Sequence record: MN445183.1
DNA: 64,000 bases
Direction: 5' to 3' (one strand)
The notes below the pieces were generated by a model. It was not told where the DNA came from. It ran no database searches and saw nothing but the letters and a program-made list of their open reading frames with translations. Position numbers and translations under genes: made by a program. How positions within the stretch are numbered: the first letter of the stretch is position 1; the number at the start of each line of letters is the position of its first letter. This document shows, one piece after another, positions 1,680-62,596 of the stretch.

Positions 1680-2057
1680 ATGGACAGCCCATGTTTTATC
1701 CTGGACCTGAACCCCCACTGGCAGTTCCTTGACCAGAACTACATGCAATCCCCTGCCAGGTTAGTGGGTACCTTCCACAGCTACCTGGGTTTAGTGCTTG
1801 ACATGTACAAAGCCATCACAAACGACACCAGCGAGGATGAAGTCTTAATTGATCACTACCTCAACGGGTCGTGTGTGCTGTTAACACCGGCTGATGAAGA
1901 AGCCACCCGCCAGGCTGTGTTACGCAGCCTTGACTTGGTCATCACATTGGCTGATGTGTGTGGTTCGGTCAACCCTGGTAAAATTGTACAATGCCCGATT
2001 GATTATGTGTCTCGTACGGTATTGATTCAATTCGGAGGCGATCATGATCAAGCATGA
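1680..2057 (+). CDS. Hypothetical protein, member of putative paralog array
   Basis: GAGG RBS, 125 aa. Confidence 0.7.
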   Translation: MDSPCFILDLNPHWQFLDQNYMQSPARLVGTFHSYLGLVLDMYKAITNDTSEDEVLIDHYLNGSCVLLTPADEEATRQAVLRSLDLVITLADVCGSVNPGKIVQCPIDYVSRTVLIQFGGDHDQA

Positions 2058-2472
2058 ATTAAACAACATCATTTTCACCCTAACACCGGACATGCAAGAT
2101 CTCTTGCACCGCACGGTAAAGTACCACCTCATCAGTGTTGGCAACATTGACATGAGTTTGTTAGTCTTTATGTCGTTAAACCAGCTGACATTAAATCAGT
2201 TAGTGGCTGCGAACATGAGTAAGAACATTGAGCGGTTATGTGCGGAGCAGTTACCTGAGTATTCGTACGAGCAGCATTTGCAGATTATTGCTACGTGTGA
2301 ACAGATCGCTGCGATCTTGTACAAAGAATACCAAAACGCACTGGACATTGCCCGCATGCCACTTCCATCACGCATGGTGAACGCAACCTACAGCTGTGGC
2401 GTCGTCACCATGTCGTTTGAGAGTATGGATGACCAATCATGCACATGGTCGTATACGACGTATCCCCAGTAG
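2044..2472 (+). CDS. Hypothetical protein, member of putative paralog array
   Basis: GGAGG RBS, overlaps neighbours. Confidence 0.7.
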   Translation: MIKHELNNIIFTLTPDMQDLLHRTVKYHLISVGNIDMSLLVFMSLNQLTLNQLVAANMSKNIERLCAEQLPEYSYEQHLQIIATCEQIAAILYKEYQNALDIARMPLPSRMVNATYSCGVVTMSFESMDDQSCTWSYTTYPQ

Positions 2473-2864
2473 TGAACTCGCTTATGGGTGAGTTGACACA
2501 GATGCGAGATATGTGTATTACTTATGAAGACTTGATTGACTTCGCTTTGTTAAACCGTGAGCCGAAAGAATCGGGTTACGAAGATTACATGGCTGATGTG
2601 CTGTGTGATTACAAAGGGGTGAACACAGAAGATCGTCATCTGGTTAAATCTGCCTACCATCGAATACGCAAATTGACCGACCTGTGGTTTCCCGCCTCAG
2701 TAGGTCGTTGGCTGTGTTGTGGTTTCGTAGGAACGTTGGGGTATTTTATACATGGTGCAGACGAAGAGCATTTAGAGATGAATGCGCAACGCCTTGCAAT
2801 AATCAACACAATCCGGTCTCATCGGGGTTTCTATGATTCAGCTATTACACACTCCGGCATTTGA
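2439..2864 (+). CDS. Hypothetical protein, member of putative paralog array
   Basis: 141-aa ORF overlapping neighbours. Confidence 0.65.
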   Translation: MHMVVYDVSPVVNSLMGELTQMRDMCITYEDLIDFALLNREPKESGYEDYMADVLCDYKGVNTEDRHLVKSAYHRIRKLTDLWFPASVGRWLCCGFVGTLGYFIHGADEEHLEMNAQRLAIINTIRSHRGFYDSAITHSGI

Positions 2865-3168
2865 TCGCGTGTTGGATGGCATTAGAGGGATAGTTGCTAC
2901 TGACGTTGATACACCCGCAGTGAGTCTGTGGGCAATCAACGATGCGGTGTATGAGCTGTTCAATAACTGCACCGACCGTGTGAATATCGTGGATGTCGAT
3001 CCAGAACTAAATGGGTTATACCAGCCATTTTATGAAGCACTCAACGAACTGCTACTGCTGAACAACATCTCCCTTTTATCCGTAGCGAATATCTTCGTAG
3101 ACGGTCCGGAGCGTTGGACAGTGGTGCTGGTCCTGGACACACCACGAGGAATGCGTTATGGGTTATGA
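2833..3168 (+). CDS. Hypothetical protein, member of putative paralog array
   Basis: 111-aa ORF overlapping neighbours. Confidence 0.65.
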   Translation: MIQLLHTPAFDRVLDGIRGIVATDVDTPAVSLWAINDAVYELFNNCTDRVNIVDVDPELNGLYQPFYEALNELLLLNNISLLSVANIFVDGPERWTVVLVLDTPRGMRYGL

Positions 3169-3568
3169 ATTACTGGTCAAAGGTGCTACCGTCGACTTCA
3201 TCGTCGAGGCGCCTGAGATCCTTACCAGTGGCTTTACCAACACCATCATTAATGGGGTGATCGACATGGATACGGCGCAGGCCCTTGGACTCGATGTCCG
3301 AGCAAAGCATGAAGCCCTGTATCCGTTGATTAAAAACAAAGGGTACGCGGATGATCCTGCATCGTACGGTTATGTGCGCGTAACCAAAGAAAACGGATCA
3401 ACCACGATCCTGGGGATTCCATGGATTAAAGAAAGTTCGATCATTGCGAAACAACGTAACCGCATCACGGTAGATATTCCGGACGTGGGAACGAATGACA
3501 TTGCAATCGTGAAAGCTGCACTGGAGTCCAACGGGTATCCGAATGCGGTTGTGAAGCTGGTTGACTAA
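3158..3568 (+). CDS. Conserved jumbo-phage protein (phiKZ gp49-like)
   Basis: GAGGA RBS; G(I/V)PWI motif; position immediately upstream of the polymerase gene. Confidence 0.6.
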   Translation: MGYELLVKGATVDFIVEAPEILTSGFTNTIINGVIDMDTAQALGLDVRAKHEALYPLIKNKGYADDPASYGYVRVTKENGSTTILGIPWIKESSIIAKQRNRITVDIPDVGTNDIAIVKAALESNGYPNAVVKLVD

Positions 3569-3570
3569 CG

Positions 3571-3605
3571 CCATGGGGGCTTCGGCTCCCATGGTTGTTT
3601 TATGC
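3571..3605 (+). terminator. Intrinsic terminator hairpin followed by TTATGC
   Basis: CCATGGGGGC-TTCG-GCTCCCATGG then TTGTTTTATGC. Confidence 0.8.
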
Positions 3606-3672
3606 TCCCTATTTATTTTTTGACATAACGGAGCTATTCAATAGAGACCATTTACAGCCGTAAGGATATTCC

Positions 3673-5784
3673 ATGGAATTGTTCGTTAATCCGGCGAGCT
3701 CGTATAAGCGAGATTTACGCATTCACCATCACTACTGCGAGAATAAAGCAAAGTCATTGTCGCTGACGTTTGGTGAACCGATGGAAAAGACGTTGGAGTT
3801 CGTACGTCGTGTTACTGCACCTGGGGCAAAACACGGGGTAGTGGATCCACGTGTTCGTATTTTAATCCGAGGTAAGAACGGTGACCGTGAACTTAAGTTT
3901 ACCACCTTTAACAGGTTCTTATCTGCGGTTGATAAACGCAAAGCAATACTGAGTCCGTCATTAACCGCGTACTTACACCCCAGTGAAAAAGTTTCACAGT
4001 ACGCCGTGTCTACTGATAACAACATCAAGGCACGTAAAGTTATCAAGAAAGAAATGTTCGTTGCGGAGCAACGTGGCGATGTTACCACGGCAACGATTAA
4101 AGACATTATGCAGACCGGGCGTAAGCTCACCAACAACGGAATGTCTGGTGGCTTCTGCACAGCCTCTACGCCGTTCTATTGTCGTTCGGCACATAGTTCG
4201 CTAACGTCATGTTGTCGTTCGGCTACGTCGTCTACAAACGCGTTTAACGAGAAGTTCCTGGCAGGTAACCGACATTACCACTCGCCAGAGATCGTGATGG
4301 AAAACATTGCGTCGATTTGTCTACACTCGAACTACGAGTTAATCGACCAAGCCATGCGCGAGTTCAATCTGCAATACCCAACGGTTGATCAGGTGATCGC
4401 ATGCATCTATCGCGGGTCTCGTCGTTATTGGTCTGACCGTAAGTACATGGCGTTGATTCATCAGCAGGTCAGCAACATGACCGAAGGTGAACGTGCAGCA
4501 TTTATGTTTACCAGTGATATGTACCATATGCGTTTGGTTAACCCAGACTTTGTGCGTCAGATGTTGGTGGACATTGCTGAGAAGACCACGGTCGGCACGA
4601 CCGAAGACGTCGCTTTAAAAGATGGCGATGCGCGTGTGCTAGCGACAATGAAATGTGCAGAAGACATCATCCGTGTTGGTACCAAGGAATCTGAGAACTC
4701 AGAAGAGATCAAAGGCCTGGTTAAAGCCAACTATAAACTGTCCGTGCAGAACATTGAGAAATACCGCAGCTACGTGCGTGCATTCTTAGTCACACCGAAC
4801 ACACCTGCATCTATTGCCATGATGCCGCACCATGTGCGTGAAACGGTGTTAGCGTCAGATACTGACTCCTCAATCTTTACCGAACAGGATTGGATTGACT
4901 GGATTCAGCCTGACTATCAATATCGTCAGGAGCGTATTCAGATCAACGCCGCGGTAACCTTCCTGGTGTCGCAGCAGGTCGTACACTTACTGGCTATTGT
5001 GTCGGGTAACATCGGTGTTGCGGAAGAACATTTGTTCCGTCTGACGATGAAGAACGAATATTACTTCGAGACCTTCGTGTTAACCAATATGGGTAAACAC
5101 TATTTTGCCACCCAGACTGCGCGTGAGGGTAACTTCTATCCTAAGCCGAAGCTGGAACTCAAAGGTGTTCACTTACGTAACTCGAACGTACCGAAAGAAA
5201 TTCGTGATCGTGGTAATATGATCATCAATGAAATCCTGGACAAGTCCAATGCCAATGAACAGTTCTCAGTTGTGGATCTGTTGAAGCGCGTGGGTGATAT
5301 TGAACGTTTCATTATTAACTCCATCAAGAACGGTGAACCGGTGTTCTTAGCGAAAGCCACCATCAAAGATAAAGATGCGTATGCAAAACCGCTGAGCAAC
5401 AACTATTATCATTACCTGATGTGGGAAGAAGTCTTTGCACAAAAATACGGTCCGGCCCCGGCACTGCAATATCTTGGCCTGAAAGCAAAATTAGGTCTGG
5501 AATCCATGACGGCGATTAACGATTGGTTGGATGAACTTGAAGACCAGGCGTTTGCCCAACGTATGCGTGACTTCTTAGCGAAGTACGGTAAGAACAAACT
5601 GTCTCAGGTAATCATGCCTGCTGATATTGTGATGACTCAGGGGTTACCAGAAGAGGTAATTCAGGGGATTAATATTCGTCAGCTGATTATGGAAAACCTG
5701 GCGATGGTGTACTCTTGCCTTGAATCACTCGGTTTGTATTTTACTAACCCGAATGCAACTCGCTTAGTATCAGACGAACACTAA
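3673..5784 (+). CDS. polB: Family B DNA polymerase, palm/C-terminal subunit of split polymerase (phiKZ gp50-like)
   Basis: LASDTDSSIF motif C, KLTNNGMSG motif B-like segment, MKNEY and KHY motifs; 703 aa. Confidence 0.9.
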   Translation: MELFVNPASSYKRDLRIHHHYCENKAKSLSLTFGEPMEKTLEFVRRVTAPGAKHGVVDPRVRILIRGKNGDRELKFTTFNRFLSAVDKRKAILSPSLTAYLHPSEKVSQYAVSTDNNIKARKVIKKEMFVAEQRGDVTTATIKDIMQTGRKLTNNGMSGGFCTASTPFYCRSAHSSLTSCCRSATSSTNAFNEKFLAGNRHYHSPEIVMENIASICLHSNYELIDQAMREFNLQYPTVDQVIACIYRGSRRYWSDRKYMALIHQQVSNMTEGERAAFMFTSDMYHMRLVNPDFVRQMLVDIAEKTTVGTTEDVALKDGDARVLATMKCAEDIIRVGTKESENSEEIKGLVKANYKLSVQNIEKYRSYVRAFLVTPNTPASIAMMPHHVRETVLASDTDSSIFTEQDWIDWIQPDYQYRQERIQINAAVTFLVSQQVVHLLAIVSGNIGVAEEHLFRLTMKNEYYFETFVLTNMGKHYFATQTAREGNFYPKPKLELKGVHLRNSNVPKEIRDRGNMIINEILDKSNANEQFSVVDLLKRVGDIERFIINSIKNGEPVFLAKATIKDKDAYAKPLSNNYYHYLMWEEVFAQKYGPAPALQYLGLKAKLGLESMTAINDWLDELEDQAFAQRMRDFLAKYGKNKLSQVIMPADIVMTQGLPEEVIQGINIRQLIMENLAMVYSCLESLGLYFTNPNATRLVSDEH

Positions 5785-5787
5785 CCG

Positions 5788-5823
5788 GCATAAGGCTCTG
5801 GGTGGCATCAGCCACCCAGAGCC
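5788..5823. terminator. Bidirectional hairpin between convergent genes
   Basis: GCATAA then GGCTCTGGGTGGC-ATCA-GCCACCCAGAGCC (13-bp stem). Confidence 0.8.
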
Positions 5824-9260: not shown

Positions 9261-9306
9261 GCATAAACCAATAAAGAGGAGGGGTAACACCCTCCTCTTT
9301 TTATGC
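9261..9306 (+). terminator. Terminator with GCATAA/TTATGC flanks
   Basis: AAAGAGGAGGG-GTAACA-CCCTCCTCTTT then TTATGC. Confidence 0.85.
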
Positions 9307-29463: not shown

Positions 29464-31431
29464 ATGCAAGCGTACAATTGGCAAGACTTACTCAATATGT
29501 CAGAAACCCAGATCTGGCAATTGGATCCGGGTAACAATCCCGTTATTAAAGTGAATGCGCGTGATAAGTCATTCGAGATATTGTCACGACTGGCGATACT
29601 GAGTTGGTACTGTTGGCCACTTCAGCACGCATTTCCTGGAATGCCGTTAGATAAGCGGCACTTTGCAACTTCTGCGCGCTTGTCCAATAAAACGATCCTG
29701 GGTATTTTGACCCAGGGTTATCGTGACTACGTGGATCTCCATCCGGGGATCATTGATGTGGTGAAAATTAACAGCATGGTGGCGCGTGCAGTTAACAACA
29801 TCAATAACACGTTTGTTATGCGTATTCCTGAATATGTCACGACGGGCTCGATGCGTCAGTATCTGGAGGTTTTGGATGACCCGGAACTGGCGGCCATTCG
29901 TCATGGGTTGGAACCTAACCAAAACTCTATCCGTGAAGGATACAAGCAAGGGTTAGCCGTCATCAAACGACCGGATAAGTTCATCGGTAACCAAATCGCT
30001 GAAGACATCAAGCAGGGTTCGGTATCGGACGGTCAGACATCACAGGTATTCATTGCTCGTGGTTATCTGACCGACCATAACTCCCGAATCTTTGTACGAC
30101 CCGTCATGGCGTGTTATGCGGAAGGACTCGGTTCGTTCTACGATTCCTTTGTAGAATCACGCTCAGCAACCAAAGCGATGTTGTTCCAGAAGAAACCGCT
30201 GGAAGACTCCGAATGGTTTAACCGTAAAATGCAGCTGGTTGCACAGGCTGTCCAGAACATCCACATGAATGAAGATTGTGGGTCAACGGTCACGGTACCG
30301 GTGTTGGTCAAAGAAGGGTGGCTCAGTCGTTTAGCCGGCAAGTATTATTACGCCGACGATAACAAGACGCTGAAATGCGTGTCCGATAAAGATGATCATC
30401 TCATTGGCCGCATTATTCATATGCGTTCACCAATGTATTGTAATCATTCGGACCGTTCTGGGATCTGTGAGAAATGTTACGGGAAGCTGGCCATTAGTCT
30501 GCCGTACTTTAACGCCCTGGGTGAAGTGGGTAAAAACCAAATCATCATTGGGCATATTAGTGCGACGGAAATCGGTCAGGATCTGTCACAGAAGATGTTG
30601 TCCACGAAGCACTTGGATACGTCTTCTACCACAGAACCGTTTGTGCCACGTCGTCAGGATGCAATGTACATTATTGAAGGTATGCGTGACAATGCGGTTC
30701 GCTTGCACCCACGCCTCAAGAAAGACAAGGTTAAGTTGAAAGTAAACTTTAACAAAACCACTGCATTATCTGATATCTACGTGGCTGAAAACCTGGATGA
30801 GGTTGCGACACGTGCAGGTGGCTTTAATGAGATCGTACTGGAGTTTGAACGTGACGGTGGGTTTACTGAATCGATTCCAATTCCAACTGTTCAAGGCTCA
30901 CGTCAAGGGCAGTTCACGGTTGACTTCTTACGTTACCTGCAAAAGGCTAACTGGACGAATGCGGAGAAAGGCTTCATTGTGATTGACCTGTCTACGTTCG
31001 AGTATGACATCGATGTGGTGGAATTGCCGCTGGTGCATCAGGACATGACGGTTTATCAGAAGCAGATCGAAGCGTATATTCGTTTCAGCAAAGAGTCTGC
31101 GAAGTGGAAAGGCAAGTTCATTACACCAGAAGATGCTGGCTTAGCGTTGAGTGAATTCTACTCACTGCTGTCTGAGCGTTTGAAGGTAAATATCGTACAT
31201 GCGGAAATGATGTTGTATTCGGTCATGACTTCTGACCCGGGTAACTACGATTATCGTCTGCCACGTGCGTATGAACAGCGCCAGTTCTCCTCGTATCACG
31301 AATGTATCGAATTCCGCTCATTGTCTGTGCAGCTGCTGTATCAAGAGCAGGCCACGATCATGATGAAGCCGACCACGTTCTTGGTGAAACATCGTCAACC
31401 TCACCCAGCAGACAGCATCTTTGTTGACTGA
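29464..31431 (+). CDS. rpoC: Non-virion RNA polymerase beta' C-terminal subunit (phiKZ gp74-like)
   Basis: ARGYLTD, EDCGS, RSPMYC, ICEKCYG and QKMLSTKH motifs. Confidence 0.9.
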   Translation: MQAYNWQDLLNMSETQIWQLDPGNNPVIKVNARDKSFEILSRLAILSWYCWPLQHAFPGMPLDKRHFATSARLSNKTILGILTQGYRDYVDLHPGIIDVVKINSMVARAVNNINNTFVMRIPEYVTTGSMRQYLEVLDDPELAAIRHGLEPNQNSIREGYKQGLAVIKRPDKFIGNQIAEDIKQGSVSDGQTSQVFIARGYLTDHNSRIFVRPVMACYAEGLGSFYDSFVESRSATKAMLFQKKPLEDSEWFNRKMQLVAQAVQNIHMNEDCGSTVTVPVLVKEGWLSRLAGKYYYADDNKTLKCVSDKDDHLIGRIIHMRSPMYCNHSDRSGICEKCYGKLAISLPYFNALGEVGKNQIIIGHISATEIGQDLSQKMLSTKHLDTSSTTEPFVPRRQDAMYIIEGMRDNAVRLHPRLKKDKVKLKVNFNKTTALSDIYVAENLDEVATRAGGFNEIVLEFERDGGFTESIPIPTVQGSRQGQFTVDFLRYLQKANWTNAEKGFIVIDLSTFEYDIDVVELPLVHQDMTVYQKQIEAYIRFSKESAKWKGKFITPEDAGLALSEFYSLLSERLKVNIVHAEMMLYSVMTSDPGNYDYRLPRAYEQRQFSSYHECIEFRSLSVQLLYQEQATIMMKPTTFLVKHRQPHPADSIFVD

Positions 31432-31441
31432 GGGGTAAACC

Positions 31442-34032
31442 ATGCGCAGTACCGCAACAATCACGTTGAGCAGTCACGGCTTTCGCGTAACTGATTTCAA
31501 TAGTGAATTCGCGGTTCACCTCGCACAGTTCTGTCGCCGCTTCATTCTACATAAGCCGGAATCCAAGGTTGTTAACGGTAAACGTATCTTGGTAAACATT
31601 CCGGACCGTGTGTTTGCTGCGGCGACTAAGGACCGTAAGGAACTACGGTTTCATATCAACTGTCTTGAGGACTTCAAGAACTTCATGCGGAACTGCGGTT
31701 ATAACACTGACCGCTTTAAAACAGTTCAGCTTGAGGTGCCTGAAGGCCGCGATGCAAAGTTTGAATTCATCGCCCCCAATATTGCGCCTAGGGAACACCA
31801 GGTTGAGTGGCTGGATTACCAGCTTAACCTGGACCCTGTAAAGGTCAATACCAAAATAAACACCTTACAGACGGGAAAGGAAAAGCCCAACCACTAACAT
31901 CGTTAATTAAGACCCCAGGTGGTTGGGCATTTATGGGCACTATGCAGGTTGGTGATTTAGTCACTGCACCTGATGGCACATACACCAAAGTGTTAGGTGT
32001 GTTTCCTCAAGGTAAGAAACAGATTTACCGATTAGATTTCGGTGATGGTCGTTCTACCCGTTGTTGTAAAGAGCATCTCTGGGAGGTTTATTTTCACACC
32101 AATTCACCGGATAAACGCTGGCAGGTAGTTAATACGGAACAGCTTATTCAGTACTTTAATAGCGTGAAAATGCCACGCGTTTCTGTTCGATTGGCTCAAT
32201 CTGAAAACTCTCCTGATTTAGTGTTACCGATGGATCCTTACGCGTTAGGTGTGTTGTTAGGCGATGGTGGCTTTACAGGTACGAACTTGATGCTGAGTAC
32301 ACCTGATGATTTCATTGTTAATGAGATCGCTAAACTACTACCGCCGGAGTTAGAGATAAAGCACAGAAGTAAATACGACTACGGCATCGCTAAGCGAGAT
32401 GGTCTGTACGGGGAAAACTCGTGGATACAAATCCTGCGTAGCTTTGGTCTATTTGGAAAACCTTCTCACGAGAAGGAGATCCCTGAGCAATACCTCAATG
32501 GCTCAACGCAGCAGCGACTTTCATTATTACAAGGTTTACTGGATACGGATGGAACGGTTCAAAAGAGCGGTTCTGTGTCGTTTGCTTCGTCCAGCCAGAA
32601 GATGGCTGAGCAGGTTCAGTACCTTGTTCGTTCGTTAGGCGGAATGGCAGCATTACGTTCTCGAATACCTACTTTCACCTACAACGGTGAAAAGAAGGAA
32701 GGTCGGGTCTGTTATGAGGTTGATATTCGTTACAAGGCCCCGAGTCAGTTGTTCAGATTGCCTCGCAAGAAAGACCGGACTAACGATAACAATCAGTACG
32801 CCGCAGGATTGAAGTTACGTATTACCGGTATTAAGGAAGATGGTTTCGAAGAAGCACAATGCATTATGGTTGAGCATCCCGATCATCTTTACGTGACTGA
32901 TAACTTCGTGGTGACTCATAACACCTTCTGCGCTATCTATCAGATGGTGAAGATGGGTAAACGGACCATCATTACCTTGATGCCCAAGTACATCAATACT
33001 TGGTTGGTGGGTTTAGCGGACTTCGTTAAGCTGAAGCCAGAAGACATCATGGTGGTGCAAGGGTCGTTAGAACTCAATGCTGCGATGAAGATCGCTGACC
33101 AGGGCAAACTGTCCGCGAAGATTATCATCGTGTCCTTACCGACGTACCAGTATTTCATGTCGGAATACGAGGACAACAATGGAGTGATGCAGCATTACAA
33201 CTATACACCCGATCAGTTCTGGGAAGTCATGGAACCCGGGTTGTTGGTTGTGGATGAAGGGCACGAATCCATTCATGCGCTTTATCGGTACGACCTGTAC
33301 TGTAACGTACGTAACAAGGTGGTGTTGTCAGCCACCCTAGAAGCGGACAACCGCTTCATCAACGAGATGTATGACATTATTTATCCGAAAGCAACACGGT
33401 TCCGTGGGGGTGAGTATGATAAGTACATTGAGTCTATCGCGTTGATGTATGGTTTAACCAGTACAAAGAAAATTAAGTACGGTGGGTTTGGTGGGACTTA
33501 CTCGCATGTGAAGCTCGAGCAGTGCATCATGAAAGACAGACGTATATTGGAAACGTATCTCAAGTTTATTGGAGACACGGCCGATTACTTCTTCTTTAAG
33601 ATCAAGCAGCCAGAACAACGATTGCTGGTCTATTGCGCAACAGTGGATATGTGCGTGAAGGTGGTGTCGTATTTACGTAACCGCCATAATGGGAAAGACC
33701 TGATTATCAACAAGTATACTCAGGAAGATCCGAAGACGACGCTGTATGAATCCGATGTGACTGTCTCGACACTGATGTCAGCAGGGACCGGGGTGGATAT
33801 CCCAGGGCTGCGCACGGTGATCATGACGGTAGCAATTGGGTCCAAACAGAAGAACGACCAGGCTCTAGGTCGTTTACGTCGTTTGAAGGATTACCCGGAT
33901 GTCACCCCAACCTTTGTCTACTTTGTGTGCAGCCAGATTCGCCCACAGGTGGAGTATCATCGTAAGAAGCTGGAGAACTTTGCGAACAAGACGTTGAGTC
34001 AGCGCACGTTCAACAGCGGTTTCTCACTTTAA
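31442..34032 (+). CDS. SF2 DExH helicase (phiKZ gp75-like), split by a -1 frame change at 31873-31879 and containing an intein
   Basis: ORF 31442-31897 ends LQTGKEKPNH; the -1 frame gives TGKGK-[intein]-TFC; later VVDEGHE, LSATL, STLMSAGTGVDIPGL and QALGRLR motifs. Confidence 0.85.
31873..31928 (+). promoter_or_regulatory. Candidate programmed -1 ribosomal frameshift signal
   Basis: G GGA AAG heptamer, 5-nt spacer GAAAA, stem GCCCAACCAC(31885-31894)/GTGGTTGGGC(31919-31928). Confidence 0.6.
31885..32922 (+). mobile_element. Class-3 intein with LAGLIDADG homing endonuclease (346 aa)
   Basis: Starts AQPLTSLIKTPGGW; block B CCKEHLW, block F AQCI, ends VVTHN before +1 Thr; LGVLLGDG and LQGLLDTDG. 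Confidence 0.9.
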
Positions 34033-34103
34033 TAACGTATCTGATGCAGAAGCTGGGCTCTGGCCTGGTTTCTGTGTCTTTCTTTTTTCAAAGGGGATTG
34101 AAG

Positions 34104-34972: not shown

Positions 34973-35686
34973 ATGAACAACGAAGACAAGAAAATCACCG
35001 CAGCAACGATATCCACCAAGCACCTGGACGCAGTAGCCACTGGCCGTCAGCTGGGTAAGCCGTATATGACCAAACTGGCATACACCGCGGCAGCTATACT
35101 TGATGCTGAAAACATTCCGCGTGTGGGGGCGTTTTCACCCAACCACCTGCAACTGAACCTGCGTGAGGCTGAGCCAGGTGAACTACCGAGCATTGGCCGT
35201 GGCATGACTCGCCCTACCATGTTCTTTGCTGATCCTTACCCGTTCCTGGGCTACTGGCATGATGCGATCAGAAACCAACAGCTTCGTAAGAATCTGCACA
35301 AAAAGATGTTTGGTTCTGACCGTGACGTTTGGGATCGCTTTACGCGTGAGTTTCACAGCTGGACACCGGAGTACGTGCATCTGAAAGCACGTATCAAACC
35401 GATTGAATCCTACTGGGCAAGAGACTGGCTGACCAACGTGTGTTGCCCACGTGTTAACCAGTACGATCCGGTTGATTACTACAAGTATTGTGAACACTTG
35501 CAGTATGACGTTCAACAGTCGCGGGTCCGTCGTAAATACGAGTTTTATACCGGACCTCGTTTAGTGTCCGCCTGGTCACCGAGCGGCATATCTCGCTATA
35601 ACCCTTTCCCCATTGATGATCACGCAAAGGAAATGCTGGCTCAGCTGATTCCTGCCCCGTATCAGTCGCCGAAGAGAATCTACTAA
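34973..35686 (+). CDS. Hypothetical protein
   Basis: AAGGA RBS, 237 aa. Confidence 0.7.
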   Translation: MNNEDKKITAATISTKHLDAVATGRQLGKPYMTKLAYTAAAILDAENIPRVGAFSPNHLQLNLREAEPGELPSIGRGMTRPTMFFADPYPFLGYWHDAIRNQQLRKNLHKKMFGSDRDVWDRFTREFHSWTPEYVHLKARIKPIESYWARDWLTNVCCPRVNQYDPVDYYKYCEHLQYDVQQSRVRRKYEFYTGPRLVSAWSPSGISRYNPFPIDDHAKEMLAQLIPAPYQSPKRIY

Positions 35687-36366
35687 TGGCAAAGAACCAC
35701 GACTACTATACCCTGGCCCACAACTACGCTTTGAAGATCGGACTTGACCGTACTGATGCTGAAAGCGTAGCAACCACCTTGTCTGTGTTGATCCCCCTGC
35801 ACCACAACTGGGGTAGTCCGGACGAACCATTGTGGGCGGATAATCAGCACGTGCTGGATAGCTTTAACAAGCTGCACCAGGGCCGACCGTACACACGGTT
35901 AATTCCGGATGGGTTAAGTATCAACATCATCCGTGTGGAAACGTACGACGATCTGCCCAAGACCACCACGTACGGTCAGCTGTACCACATCAAGCAAGGC
36001 GGGCACCTGCTTGAGACTCGACCTAACGGACAAACCGAGTCAGTGAACCCACGTATCCGTATCGCCATCACCGAGCCGATTGCCACTAATCCGGTACTGT
36101 TAGATGCTTTACGTGAGAAAGCCAAGCAGAAGGGTTTAGAGATCGTTGTATGGGATAAGGATGCTGACCATCCTGATAACGTCATCGGTCTGGCAAAAAT
36201 GCGTGCACTTTTTGCTGACAACCCTGACCAAATGCTCAAGATCGAAGCTTCGCTACGGCGTGCTGAAGATCAGTCTTGCTGGTCAAAACCTACCGGGAAG
36301 ATTAAGTTTCGTAATCGTCCCAGTAATACTTTAACCCGTATGCGCAATCGTCAAAGGAGAGGCTAA
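35686..36366 (+). CDS. Hypothetical protein with basic tail
   Basis: TAATG coupling; ends RMRNRQRRG. Confidence 0.7.
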   Translation: MAKNHDYYTLAHNYALKIGLDRTDAESVATTLSVLIPLHHNWGSPDEPLWADNQHVLDSFNKLHQGRPYTRLIPDGLSINIIRVETYDDLPKTTTYGQLYHIKQGGHLLETRPNGQTESVNPRIRIAITEPIATNPVLLDALREKAKQKGLEIVVWDKDADHPDNVIGLAKMRALFADNPDQMLKIEASLRRAEDQSCWSKPTGKIKFRNRPSNTLTRMRNRQRRG

Positions 36367-38069: not shown

Positions 38070-38422
38070 GCAAACACAAACGTTTGAAAGCAGCGCGTCG
38101 TAAGCAGCATAATACGACGGCTAAAGTACGGGCACGTGAGTGGGCCGAACAGTGCGCCGCACGTCGTCAGAAGGCCGATGAGATTCGTGCACAGATTCTT
38201 GCCACCGCATCGGAATTAAAGATCAGTGAGCCACTACCCCCAACCGATCCGCTCTCTAAGTTGTTGGATGGGTTCCTGGACGGGGGTGAATTACCCGCGG
38301 GTCTTTACCATCCTGACGGTACGCTGGATCTCTTCAGTATTGTTCAACGCGTTCAACGCCTTGGTGGCGTATCGTTCATTGACACTGAAGGGCCTATCAA
38401 ATCTAGGGAGGCTTCCTCATGA
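38066..38422 (+). CDS. Hypothetical protein with basic N-terminus
   Basis: ATGA coupling. Confidence 0.65.
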   Translation: MSKHKRLKAARRKQHNTTAKVRAREWAEQCAARRQKADEIRAQILATASELKISEPLPPTDPLSKLLDGFLDGGELPAGLYHPDGTLDLFSIVQRVQRLGGVSFIDTEGPIKSREASS

Positions 38423-43099: not shown

Positions 43100-43148
43100 A
43101 AGCACGAGGGTCTCTTCTCCCGTTGGGGAGAAGAGACACCTCTATGCT
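43094..43148. terminator. Bidirectional bulged hairpin element
   Basis: GCATAAAAGCAC-GAGG-GTCTCTTCTCCC-GTTG-GGGAGAAGAGAC-A-CCTC-TATGC. Confidence 0.8.
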
Positions 43149-62548: not shown

Positions 62549-62596
62549 AGCACAGAGGGTTCCTCTCCCACTGCGGGAGAGGAACACCTCTTATGC
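62543..62596. terminator. Bidirectional bulged hairpin element
   Basis: GCATAAAGCAC-AGAGG-GTTCCTCTCCC-ACTGC-GGGAGAGGAAC-A-CCTCT-TATGC. Confidence 0.8.

Follow-up and report, generated by a model that had tools for sequence, protein, structure and literature searches.

The stretch of DNA analysed here, referred to as the window, comprises 64 kb (bases 186001-250000) of the 288-kb genome of Salmonella phage vB_SalM_SA002 (MN445183.1; hereafter SA002), a sewage isolate whose host is S. Heidelberg, and our subject is a helicase gene on its plus strand that is broken by a one-base offset within the codons of its catalytic P-loop and carries an intein directly after the break. The GenBank annotation of MN445183.1 lists the gene as two coding sequences (CDSs), a 'putative RAD2/SF2 helicase 1' of 151 amino acids (aa) and a 'putative RAD2/SF2 helicase 2' of 699 aa. 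Database matches and a helicase tree place it in the phiKZ-type 'RAD2/SF2 helicase' family, with orthologues in PhiPA3 (gp068) and 201phi2-1. The upstream part is an open reading frame (ORF) of 151 aa at 31442..31897, which holds N-extein codons 1-146, up to the residues TGK, followed by an out-of-frame tail, EKPNH, and a TAA stop; the downstream part is the C-extein (32923..34032; 369 aa, TFCAIYQMVK...SGFSL), which lies in the frame of the intein and carries the remaining SF2 motifs and the Helicase_C domain. The two exteins match consecutive stretches of the phrog_16 DNA helicase profile (positions 67-215, E 3.8e-15, and positions 326-613, E 8.2e-31), Helicase_C scores 22.0 bits, slightly below the Pfam cut-off of 23.5, and together the parts supply the motif I (P-loop xTGxGKT), the helicase core and the Helicase_C domain of an SF2 helicase. 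A search of the PDB returned no sequence relative of the helicase extein, and one of Rfam gave no match. In Erwinia phage pEa_SNUABM_48 the orthologue has no intein and forms one ORF of 517 aa, to whose N-terminus the SA002 0-frame ORF is 82% identical and to which the C-extein is 86% identical; because it reads NTLQTGKGK|TFCAIYQMVK, it fixes both the point of insertion, between Lys148 and Thr149, and the one-base offset. No promoter or terminator signal was seen at the junction of the N-extein and C-extein parts, so that both would lie on one mRNA.

Read from 31442, the SA002 0 frame runs ...CAG ACG GGA AAG GAA AAG CCC AAC CAC TAA, giving a protein that ends in TGKEKPNH and from which the second Gly-Lys of the P-loop is missing. 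Across the Thr, Gly and Lys codons of the P-loop lies the slippery heptamer G_GGA_AAG (GGGAAAG; 31873..31879) in the X_XXY_YYZ register, followed by a spacer of 5 nucleotides (nt), GAAAA (31880..31884), which in the -1 frame forms part of the second Gly-Lys pair (GGA AAA). The -1 frame is open from 31828 to 34032 and encodes ...GKGKAQPLTSLIKTPGGW...VVTHN|TFCAIYQMVK..., with GKGKAQPL as its P-loop part, so that both frames are open over 31828..31897, the 0-frame stop lying five codons past the Lys codon of the heptamer. The P-loop TGKGKT is rebuilt solely by a -1 shift followed by splicing, and the heptamer is the only productive slip site because a later slip (for example on A_AAG at 31882-31885) would, we reason, put a Glu into the P-loop. 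The bare string is not over-represented in the window (4 copies versus 6.3 expected), and the meaning of the heptamer therefore rests on its register and position. A review calls G_GGA_AAG 'highly shift-prone' in E. coli and names HCTV-5 as employing it to express g-t (PMC5009743). No Shine-Dalgarno-like stimulator is visible upstream of the SA002 slip site.

The insert between Lys148 and Thr149 of the P-loop, whose boundaries were set by comparison with intein-free orthologues, is an intein of 346 aa (31885..32922; AQPLTSLIKTPGGW ... VVTHN). By every sequence mark it is a class 3 intein, as that class has been defined (PMC3196547): it begins with Ala1 (AQPL...) and has no Cys, Ser or Thr nucleophile, it ends in His-Asn before a +1 Thr (THN|T), and it carries the WCT motif, with the Trp in CCKEHLW (block B12), the Cys in EEAQCIMVE (F4) and the Thr in VVTHN (G5), these block positions having been assigned by eye from an alignment to EHLW, ICIEV and THN of 6RIZ and to class 3 DnaB inteins. 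Its closest solved relatives include the class 3 mycobacterial DnaB inteins (6BS8, 6RIX/6RIY). Within it, intein residues 199-284 (32479..32736) form a predicted LAGLIDADG homing-endonuclease domain, matched by Pfam LAGLIDADG_3 (E 3.9e-12, 46.7 bits against a cut-off of 22.5) and Hom_end (E 9.3e-5, 22.9 bits against 21.1), in which the LAGLIDADG-type motifs LGVLLGDGG and LQGLLDTDG are visible.

Directly after the spacer lies a hairpin (31885..31928) with a perfect 10-bp stem, GCCCAACCAC (31885-31894) paired with GTGGTTGGGC (31919-31928), and a loop of 24 nt that encloses the 0-frame stop TAA (31895-31897); the hairpin and the intein begin on the same base. The predicted fold has an energy of -20.6 kcal/mol (z = -4.97), with none of 200 dinucleotide shuffles as stable, and the stem is among about five separate-arm stems of at least 10 bp in the window. 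A preliminary description of this locus, drawn up from the letters alone, had given the 0-frame stop, the heptamer, the spacer, the stem and the -1 ORF correctly throughout, and it was equally right that a -1 slip on G GGA AAG rebuilds the P-loop, this being the only event that gives TGKGK.

We consider it likely that the gene is expressed by -1 ribosomal frameshifting on G_GGA_AAG and that this is a property of the helicase gene; we infer the slippage itself, its efficiency, the role of the stem and the subsequent splicing. Most ribosomes would stay in the 0 frame, stop five codons later and release a 151-aa N-terminal fragment, while a fraction, with GGA in the P site and AAG in the A site, would slip back by one base, from GGA to GGG and from AAG to AAA, and then read GGA AAA GCC... 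in the -1 frame, rebuilding T-G-K-G-K exactly. The next codon in SA002 is the first codon of the intein, and the shifted product would be a precursor of 863 aa that splices to a helicase of 517 aa, with the GC-rich hairpin 5 nt downstream probably raising the rate of slippage. These sizes, already predicted in the preliminary description, are those of real proteins: the relatives designated P0001 and P0002 are both 863 aa in frame, and the pEa_SNUABM_48 orthologue is 517 aa. The further claim of that description, that a functional SA002 helicase would need recoding followed by protein splicing, is likewise supported, and the break is genuine, as set out below.

Other routes to a downstream product were considered and set aside. 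A split intein, re-initiation and an internal start are all disfavoured by the -1 frame, which has no start codon 5' of the heptamer and whose first ATG comes after motif I, at 31933 in SA002 and at the Met of QMVKM in intein-free alleles. The tail of the 0 frame, EKPNH, is, moreover, out-of-frame sequence that varies between alleles (VKPNH, ARPNH, ERPNRLTH) and not the intein N-fragment in which the upstream ORF of a naturally split, trans-splicing intein would end. Transcriptional slippage was rejected on the ground that the A and G runs are merely 3-4 nt long.

The orthologous helicase with its intein also occurs as one uninterrupted ORF, as in Proteus phage 10 (861 aa) and Erwinia phage Rebecca (860 aa), whose junctions read ACA GGT AAA GGC AAA CTC and ACT GGT AAG GGA AAA GCA, respectively, and lack the heptamer. 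A search of 5.8 billion proteins returned P0001 (97% identical over the intein) and P0002 (92%), both of exactly 863 aa, together with about 100 more distant homologues of about 860 aa. In the DNA that encodes such proteins (related DNA sequences are designated here by L numbers, as proteins are by P numbers), L017 (ACC GGC AAA GGG AAG GCA) and L018 and L019 (ACT GGT AAG GGC AAA GCC) are likewise in frame without the heptamer, and P0125 and P0126 have the same intein type in frame and without it. SA002 and L017 are 95.9% identical over the gene, with exactly one gap between them, and that gap, at the junction, is the sole coding indel in an alignment of 9.3 kb.

A close in-frame relative such as L017, at 96% identity, together with the position of the break within a G/A-run region (GGGAAAGGAAAAG), would fit a homopolymer under-call or assembly error of one base in the SA002 record, and we found neither a published account of the sequencing of SA002, or of its method, nor a read set for it. 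Against this stands the recurrence of the same break in six other runs of the SA002 clade, independent and from distinct strains, of which L020-L023 have no intein (...CAG ACG GGA AAG GAA AAA CCT TTT GTG..., with GKGKTFCAIYQMVKM in the -1 frame) and L024 and L025 carry it, the C-exteins of these six being 5-10% diverged from that of SA002, and in nine further records or contigs from other lineages and different sequencing groups. Because it recurs in different strains both with and without the intein, the frame break is a natural allele independent of the intein. The frameshifted patch also differs from the in-frame patch at several wobble sites besides the missing base, as an allele would and a miscall would not. 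Where SA002 is syntenic with pEa_SNUABM_48, over about 50 kb, no gene apart from the helicase has a match that changes frame; two further candidate breaks proved to be antisense or intergenic shadows, and a generally error-prone SA002 assembly was rejected since no other sense-strand break occurs there. The protein clusters of the two SA002 fragments contain short N-terminal proteins from unrelated datasets as well, among them P0137, which ends in TGKEKPNH and otherwise differs from SA002, P0136, which ends in TGKVKPNH, and P0129 (156 aa, on four contigs of up to 168 kb), which ends in TGKEKPFVQFTRW, that is, with the same break in an intein-free allele; several proteins of 362 aa with MVKM or MVQM at the start are what remains, downstream of the interruption, of intein-free alleles. 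The probability of an error is, in our judgement, negligible, and a homopolymer deletion, which the preliminary description had named as the possible undoing of its own reading, is not borne out, the break being reproduced in independent assemblies.

Beyond the SA002 clade, the identical ACG GGA AAG with the one-base offset is found in four deeper lineage groups. In L049, whose N-extein is 29% and whose intein about 53% identical to those of SA002, the sequence reads CAA ACG GGA AAG GAA AGG CCC AAC CGC...TGA, so that heptamer, offset and 5-nt spacer are those of SA002, and the stem is GCCCAACCGC/GTGGTTGGGC; L064 (N-extein 73% identical) reads CAG ACG GGA AAG GCA AGG CCC AAC CAC TAA and carries an intein; L056 has none and reads CAA ACG GGA AAG GAA AGT CCC TCA GCG CGT TAG. 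L065 (2938-4638) has an L049-like helicase in which that heptamer again comes first, and the intein that occupies this P-loop site is of another and smaller kind (starting ALKFDTPVKTPNDW / ALKFDTPVKTPNDWVCIGDLKVGD), its length of about 210 aa being obtained by subtraction. Since inteins of both the SA002 type and the L065 type stand behind the G_GGA_AAG break, at least two intein types have landed downstream of the slip site. The gene is annotated as two CDSs in PS119XW, PA1C, BRkr, HHBS36_1 and phiHQ, five cultured P. aeruginosa phages that come from different laboratories; they share the intein-free sequence CAA ACG GGA AAG GGA AAA CCC TCA CGA GCC TAG, with GKGKTLTSLASL... in the -1 frame, and in alleles of this type a second heptamer, G_GGA_AAA, directly follows the first, the tandem heptamers giving an identical product. 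The tail of phiLBG22 matches this type, as seen in a tblastn match only. Altogether, six cultured, plaque-forming phages carry the frameshifted allele. A length-restricted search for short N-terminal fragments brought up many more, with tails after TGK of ARPNH, ERP, ENP, ARRSAH, ESPSAR and others, while a pattern scan of IMG/VR for the frameshifted junction gave 0 matches, one of the JGI metagenomes gave 16, all in unrelated genes, and protein scans of IMG/VR with SA002-type queries found only in-frame intein-free orthologues or distant inteins.

The link between the offset and the heptamer is strict among the alleles examined (16 one-base-short and 26 in-frame): ACG GGA AAG, in the X_XXY_YYZ register, is present in 16/16 of the former, and an X_XXY_YYZ motif of any kind in 0/26 of the latter. 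The in-frame alleles encode the Thr as ACA, ACC or ACT, never as ACG, and use GGA in 1/26 and GGG in 1/26, their Gly and Lys wobble positions being free. Among the one-base-short alleles the heptamer is invariant, and the next two codons of the -1 frame vary only at the wobble position (GGA/GGT/GGC/GGG; AAA/AAG), which is why the 0-frame tails differ (EKP, VKP, ARP, ERP, ESP, GKP). On the helicase tree the frameshifted state needs 6 changes, of which the well-supported branches force at least 5. This is the pattern that would be expected of a slip site under selection.

The preliminary description had gone further and proposed a dedicated, frameshift-gated intein, whose own stem controls the entry of ribosomes and thereby caps the levels of helicase and homing endonuclease. 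Such a device would accord with the perfect or near-perfect stem that starts at intein base 1, 5 nt past the heptamer, in SA002, L024, L064 and L049, the last with a stem stronger still (-31.4 kcal/mol); expression of the intein and its endonuclease would depend on the shift in these alleles; and the frameshifted patch lies within 17 nt of the insertion point, standing in L024 and L025 on otherwise in-frame-type backgrounds, as co-conversion predicts. Nor are the intein-bearing relatives all in frame, the observation that the proposal had named as counting against itself: L024, L025, L064, L049 and L065 are frameshifted. Yet three lineage groups have this heptamer and offset but no intein (L020-L023, L056 and the PS119XW clade), and the same intein type occurs in frame without the heptamer (L017, L018/L019, P0125, P0126, Proteus phage 10, Rebecca and the roughly 100 proteins of about 860 aa). 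Found as it is, with the same offset, both where there is no intein and in several lineages far apart, the slip site is a feature of the helicase gene and not of the intein. As a general model the gated intein is already largely refuted by the intein-free frameshifted alleles, and we hold it to be very improbable; what is left of it is the claim that the stem may stimulate slippage in SA002.

The hairpin itself argues in the same direction. The in-frame L017 folds an equivalent helix at -22.4 kcal/mol (z -5.3), hence at least as strong as that of SA002, and equivalent helices are found in the in-frame L018 and in Proteus phage 10 (-17.8 kcal/mol); four of the ten stem pairs are fixed by Gln-Pro and Gly-Trp codons, and the hairpin largely follows from the QPL...GGW codons. 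Five of six related intein alleles keep the helix regardless of their frame state, with three pairs showing double changes, but covariation across these six sequences is weak, 28/500 shuffles reaching the observed pairing. Of the seven frameshifted lineage groups, six have a stem that begins 5-6 nt past the heptamer (energies in kcal/mol: SA002 -20.6, L064 -22.9, L049 -31.4, L056 -23.3, PS119XW -19.2, L020 -12.7), the exception being L065, with its different intein. The best hairpin 4-8 nt downstream has a median energy of -20.0 kcal/mol in frameshifted versus -14.0 in in-frame alleles (one-sided p = 0.013, uncorrected for phylogeny), and for intein-free alleles alone the corresponding comparison gives p = 0.095. 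A 3' stem is thus a common and plausibly stimulatory companion of the slip site, neither universal nor exclusive to it, nor an invention of the intein. The preliminary view of the frameshift as an intein device is not supported, given the heptamer in intein-free alleles, the intein in frame elsewhere, a hairpin equally strong in the in-frame L017, and a different intein with no suitably placed stem in L065.

Downstream of the break, the -1 frame is the only one open, the other two holding 17-25 stops, and the downstream ORFs are intact for 366-719 codons in every frameshifted lineage. The ratio of non-synonymous to synonymous substitution rates (dN/dS) of the C-extein is 0.01-0.08 among frameshifted alleles, with dS of up to 0.56. 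Pairwise ratios as proof of selection after the break are weakened by recombination and were replaced by counts of singletons, themselves still imperfect, in which the private mutations on frameshifted alleles are 11 synonymous versus 1 non-synonymous (p = 4e-7). At the level of sequence, the -1 frame is shown to be the constrained one, and the one-base-short allele to be real, recurrent and tightly tied to the heptamer.

A further reading takes the broken genes to be tolerated loss-of-function alleles, in which the P-loop is a hotspot of mutation or recombination (as a homing target with G/A runs), the indels are repair scars or endonuclease-resistant variants, the helicase is dispensable and any slippage is incidental. 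The intein, the one-base deletion and an 8-nt insertion do all map to the same few codons, N- and C-extein haplotypes recombine at the P-loop, and in-frame and frameshifted alleles coexist in near-identical phages. UvsW, a helicase of T4, is non-essential in that phage. The Agricanvirus paper likens an SF2 helicase of related phages, possibly the present gene, to T4 UvsW (PMC6690015). A null allele, however, has no reason to carry ACG GGA AAG, yet each of the 16 one-base-short alleles has it, and these belong to five or more lineages with separate places on the tree; no downstream ORF, the intein ORFs at 53% identity included, has acquired a second lesion; private mutations are overwhelmingly synonymous; the wobble variation after the heptamer respects the -1 frame; and no lesion occurs elsewhere in the gene across about 45 alleles. 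We therefore regard this reading as unlikely.

The 8-nt insertion, CCCGCATA, lies between the codons for Lys146 and Gly147, at the site that corresponds to window positions 31871-31885 (ACT GGC AAG CCCGCATA GGA AAA ACG in L029:2528-4089, L030, L031 and L032), so that the 0 frame ends in TGKPA and a stop while another frame continues ...ARIGKTFCAIYQM. Alleles of this kind occur on at least ten contigs (P0139 on 10) and on two N-extein backgrounds (P0139, P0142), and they carry no recoding signal; no plausible slip, hop or restart was found for them. A very distant helicase family represented by L063:2501-4002 (P0153; 24 cluster members, contigs of up to 0.2-1 Mb) is also one base short, reading ATG GGG AAG GAA AGA CCT, with GEGKTFSSLY... 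in a -1 frame that is open for 366 codons; on G_GGG_AAG only the P site could re-pair, which would make it either a non-canonical slip site or a G-run issue. Among the SA002-like N-terminal fragments, P0140 (146 aa, ending ...NTLQTGK) stops directly after TGK, and P0143 (172 aa) has its frame change further upstream, near EHQVEWLG.

Several observations weigh against programmed slippage as we propose it. In-frame alleles coexist with frameshifted ones in near-identical phages (L026 versus L020; HPP-Temi, a close relative of PS119XW with an intact 511-aa gene that reads ACA GGT AAA GGA AAG ACC, versus PS119XW itself), which means that the frameshift is dispensable and could be a tolerated leaky lesion and not a tuned signal. 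The 8-nt-insertion alleles persist without a slippery motif, with a C-extein that looks constrained (6 synonymous versus 1 non-synonymous private changes), and together with L063/P0153 they suggest that a broken P-loop may be survivable. N-extein haplogroups track the frame state, while C-exteins have been reshuffled among allele classes by recombination, that of SA002 being 98.6% identical to the in-frame L026 and 89.8% to the frameshifted L020; purifying selection is for this reason not cleanly assignable to the period after the break, and part of the C-extein constraint may be inherited from in-frame alleles. The PS119XW clade contributes no power, as it is nearly clonal. The identical patches in different lineages could stem from lateral transfer and not from repeated selection. 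The stem, finally, is shared by in-frame alleles (L017, PhiPA3) and missing at the right distance in the frameshifted L065.

The patch appears to move as a small unit. Among the variable sites of the N-extein, four diagnostic wobble sites (CAG, ACG, GGA, AAG) track the frame state perfectly, whereas immediately upstream this correspondence is lost: the background of L025 is of the in-frame type up to about 15 nt before the heptamer, and L024 switches to the in-frame type at positions 411-426, both of them carrying the intein. The patch is so close to the insertion point (within 17 nt) that its co-conversion during intein homing would be a natural explanation; the intein is a mobile element in its own right, inserted 5 nt past the slip site, and can carry the frameshift patch along when it homes. 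Beyond slippage as a property of the gene, we raise, as a tentative and rather doubtful extension, a conflict between the helicase gene and the homing intein, in which recoding shifts the spacing of the endonuclease target while leaving the protein unchanged, so that the one-base-short P-loop would be a 'savior indel' immune to homing, a patch that is spread as well by inteins that captured it. Such a conflict would explain the break at the homing site, the polymorphism and the recombinant backgrounds beside the inteins of L024 and L025.

Two established cases of bacterial-type recoding offer the nearest comparisons. The tail-assembly-chaperone frameshift of phage lambda, G/GT, uses G_GGA_AAG. 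The helicase alleles resemble it in the identical heptamer and -1 direction, in a short abundant 0-frame product beside a longer, rarer fusion (as we predict here), and in being a phage gene read by enterobacterial ribosomes; unlike G/GT, the SA002 site lies inside catalytic P-loop codons, the shift restores the ancestral protein and adds no new domain, the helicase site is polymorphic with coexisting in-frame alleles, and many helicase alleles have a 3' hairpin, which, to our knowledge, G/GT does not need. In E. coli dnaX, a replication ATPase gene with two products, tau and gamma, slippage occurs on A_AAA_AAG with a stem-loop about 5-6 nt downstream. Here, the likeness consists in bacterial-type -1 slippage ending in A_AAG and in a similar stem geometry, whereas the outcomes are reversed, the 0 frame of dnaX giving the full-length and the shift the truncated product, and no Shine-Dalgarno-like stimulator is visible in the helicase. 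The dnaX case serves as a model in PMC6787027.

Compensatory frameshifting of 'problem' and 'savior' indels, as with the G-run indels of herpesvirus thymidine kinase (PMC5009743), may be the best conceptual home for the helicase alleles: in both, low-level slippage makes up for a DNA indel, the product of unshifted reading probably serves no purpose, and intact alleles exist alongside. The helicase differs in having a canonical tandem-slip heptamer, often with a stem, perfectly conserved in at least five lineages, and this recurrent, conserved heptamer looks selected rather than adventitious. The intein, for its part, resembles the class 3 P-loop inteins (mycobacteriophage Bethlehem DnaB, Deinococcus Snf2, mycobacterial DnaBi1) in its Ala1 without a nucleophile, Trp at B12, Cys at F4, Thr at G5, terminal His-Asn, +1 Thr and phage helicase host gene. 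Described inteins are in-frame insertions, whereas those of SA002, L024, L025, L064, L049 and L065 are translatable only after a -1 frameshift. Neither a recoded phage helicase nor a frameshift-dependent intein turned up in the literature that we searched, and the heptamer string had no match in Sharma et al. 2014. What is new is accordingly the gene (a helicase found across phiKZ-like jumbo phages), the site inside the P-loop codons, the polymorphic and recurrent distribution and, in the SA002 type, the combination of recoding with splicing.

A helicase conserved across the phiKZ-like jumbo phages thus joins the short list of bacterial-virus genes that apparently depend on -1 frameshifting, and in alleles of the SA002 type a single protein would require both translational recoding and protein splicing to mature, a combination that we did not find described in the literature. 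The proposal is testable in cultured phages of laboratory hosts, with PS119XW, PA1C, BRkr and phiHQ on P. aeruginosa PAO1 and SA002 on Salmonella. It also entails a correction of annotation, at least six GenBank genomes listing the gene as two unrelated CDSs or as hypothetical proteins. The recurrence of an identical slip site at the homing site of an intein makes this a natural system for the interplay of mobile elements, recombination and recoding, and the presumably abundant N-terminal fragment of 140-157 aa might have a role of its own.

A related intein is found in an SNF2-type helicase, which in PhiPA3 (gp233; L006:2021-5191) is a single ORF of 1056 aa. In Pseudomonas phage PA1C (L005:2021-5175) the same gene is covered by two overlapping CDSs, 2021-3064 and 3004-5175, pointing to a frame change inside the intein that could be an error or another real break.

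The surroundings of the helicase gene are those of a phiKZ-like phage. Two RNA-polymerase beta-type genes (weak matches to Pfam RNA_pol_Rpb2_6) lie at 29464-31431 and upstream of it, the helicase following directly downstream, and this order of RNA-polymerase beta and helicase genes, as in phiKZ-like phages, is kept from SA002 to PS119XW and found also in L018:1901-5989. SA002 appears to belong among the phiKZ-like jumbo phages with multisubunit RNA polymerases. There are no tRNA genes in the window.

Pairwise comparison of SA002 with L017 (96% identical) reveals sharply bounded patches of 12-25% divergence within an alignment that is otherwise 1-3% divergent, at window positions 31780-32300, 35000-35200, 35700-35800 and 38200-38400, with one breakpoint at the site of intein insertion. 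This mosaic structure indicates frequent recombination among SA002-like phages. A local cluster of substitutions at the junction was considered as a sign of adaptation and rejected, being part of the mosaic patch of about 500 nt at 31780-32300 and not focused on the heptamer or the stem.

Directly after the helicase gene, on the plus strand, lies a terminator-like hairpin with a T-run (34043..34088). Perfect hairpins of 11-13 bp with loops of 4-6 nt, probably intrinsic terminators, are found in the window at 5794-5823, 9273-9300, 43110-43137 and 62559-62585, and three of these four share a CTCC.../...GGAG-like core (GTCTCTTCTCCC, AAAGAGGAGGG and GTTCCTCTCCC).

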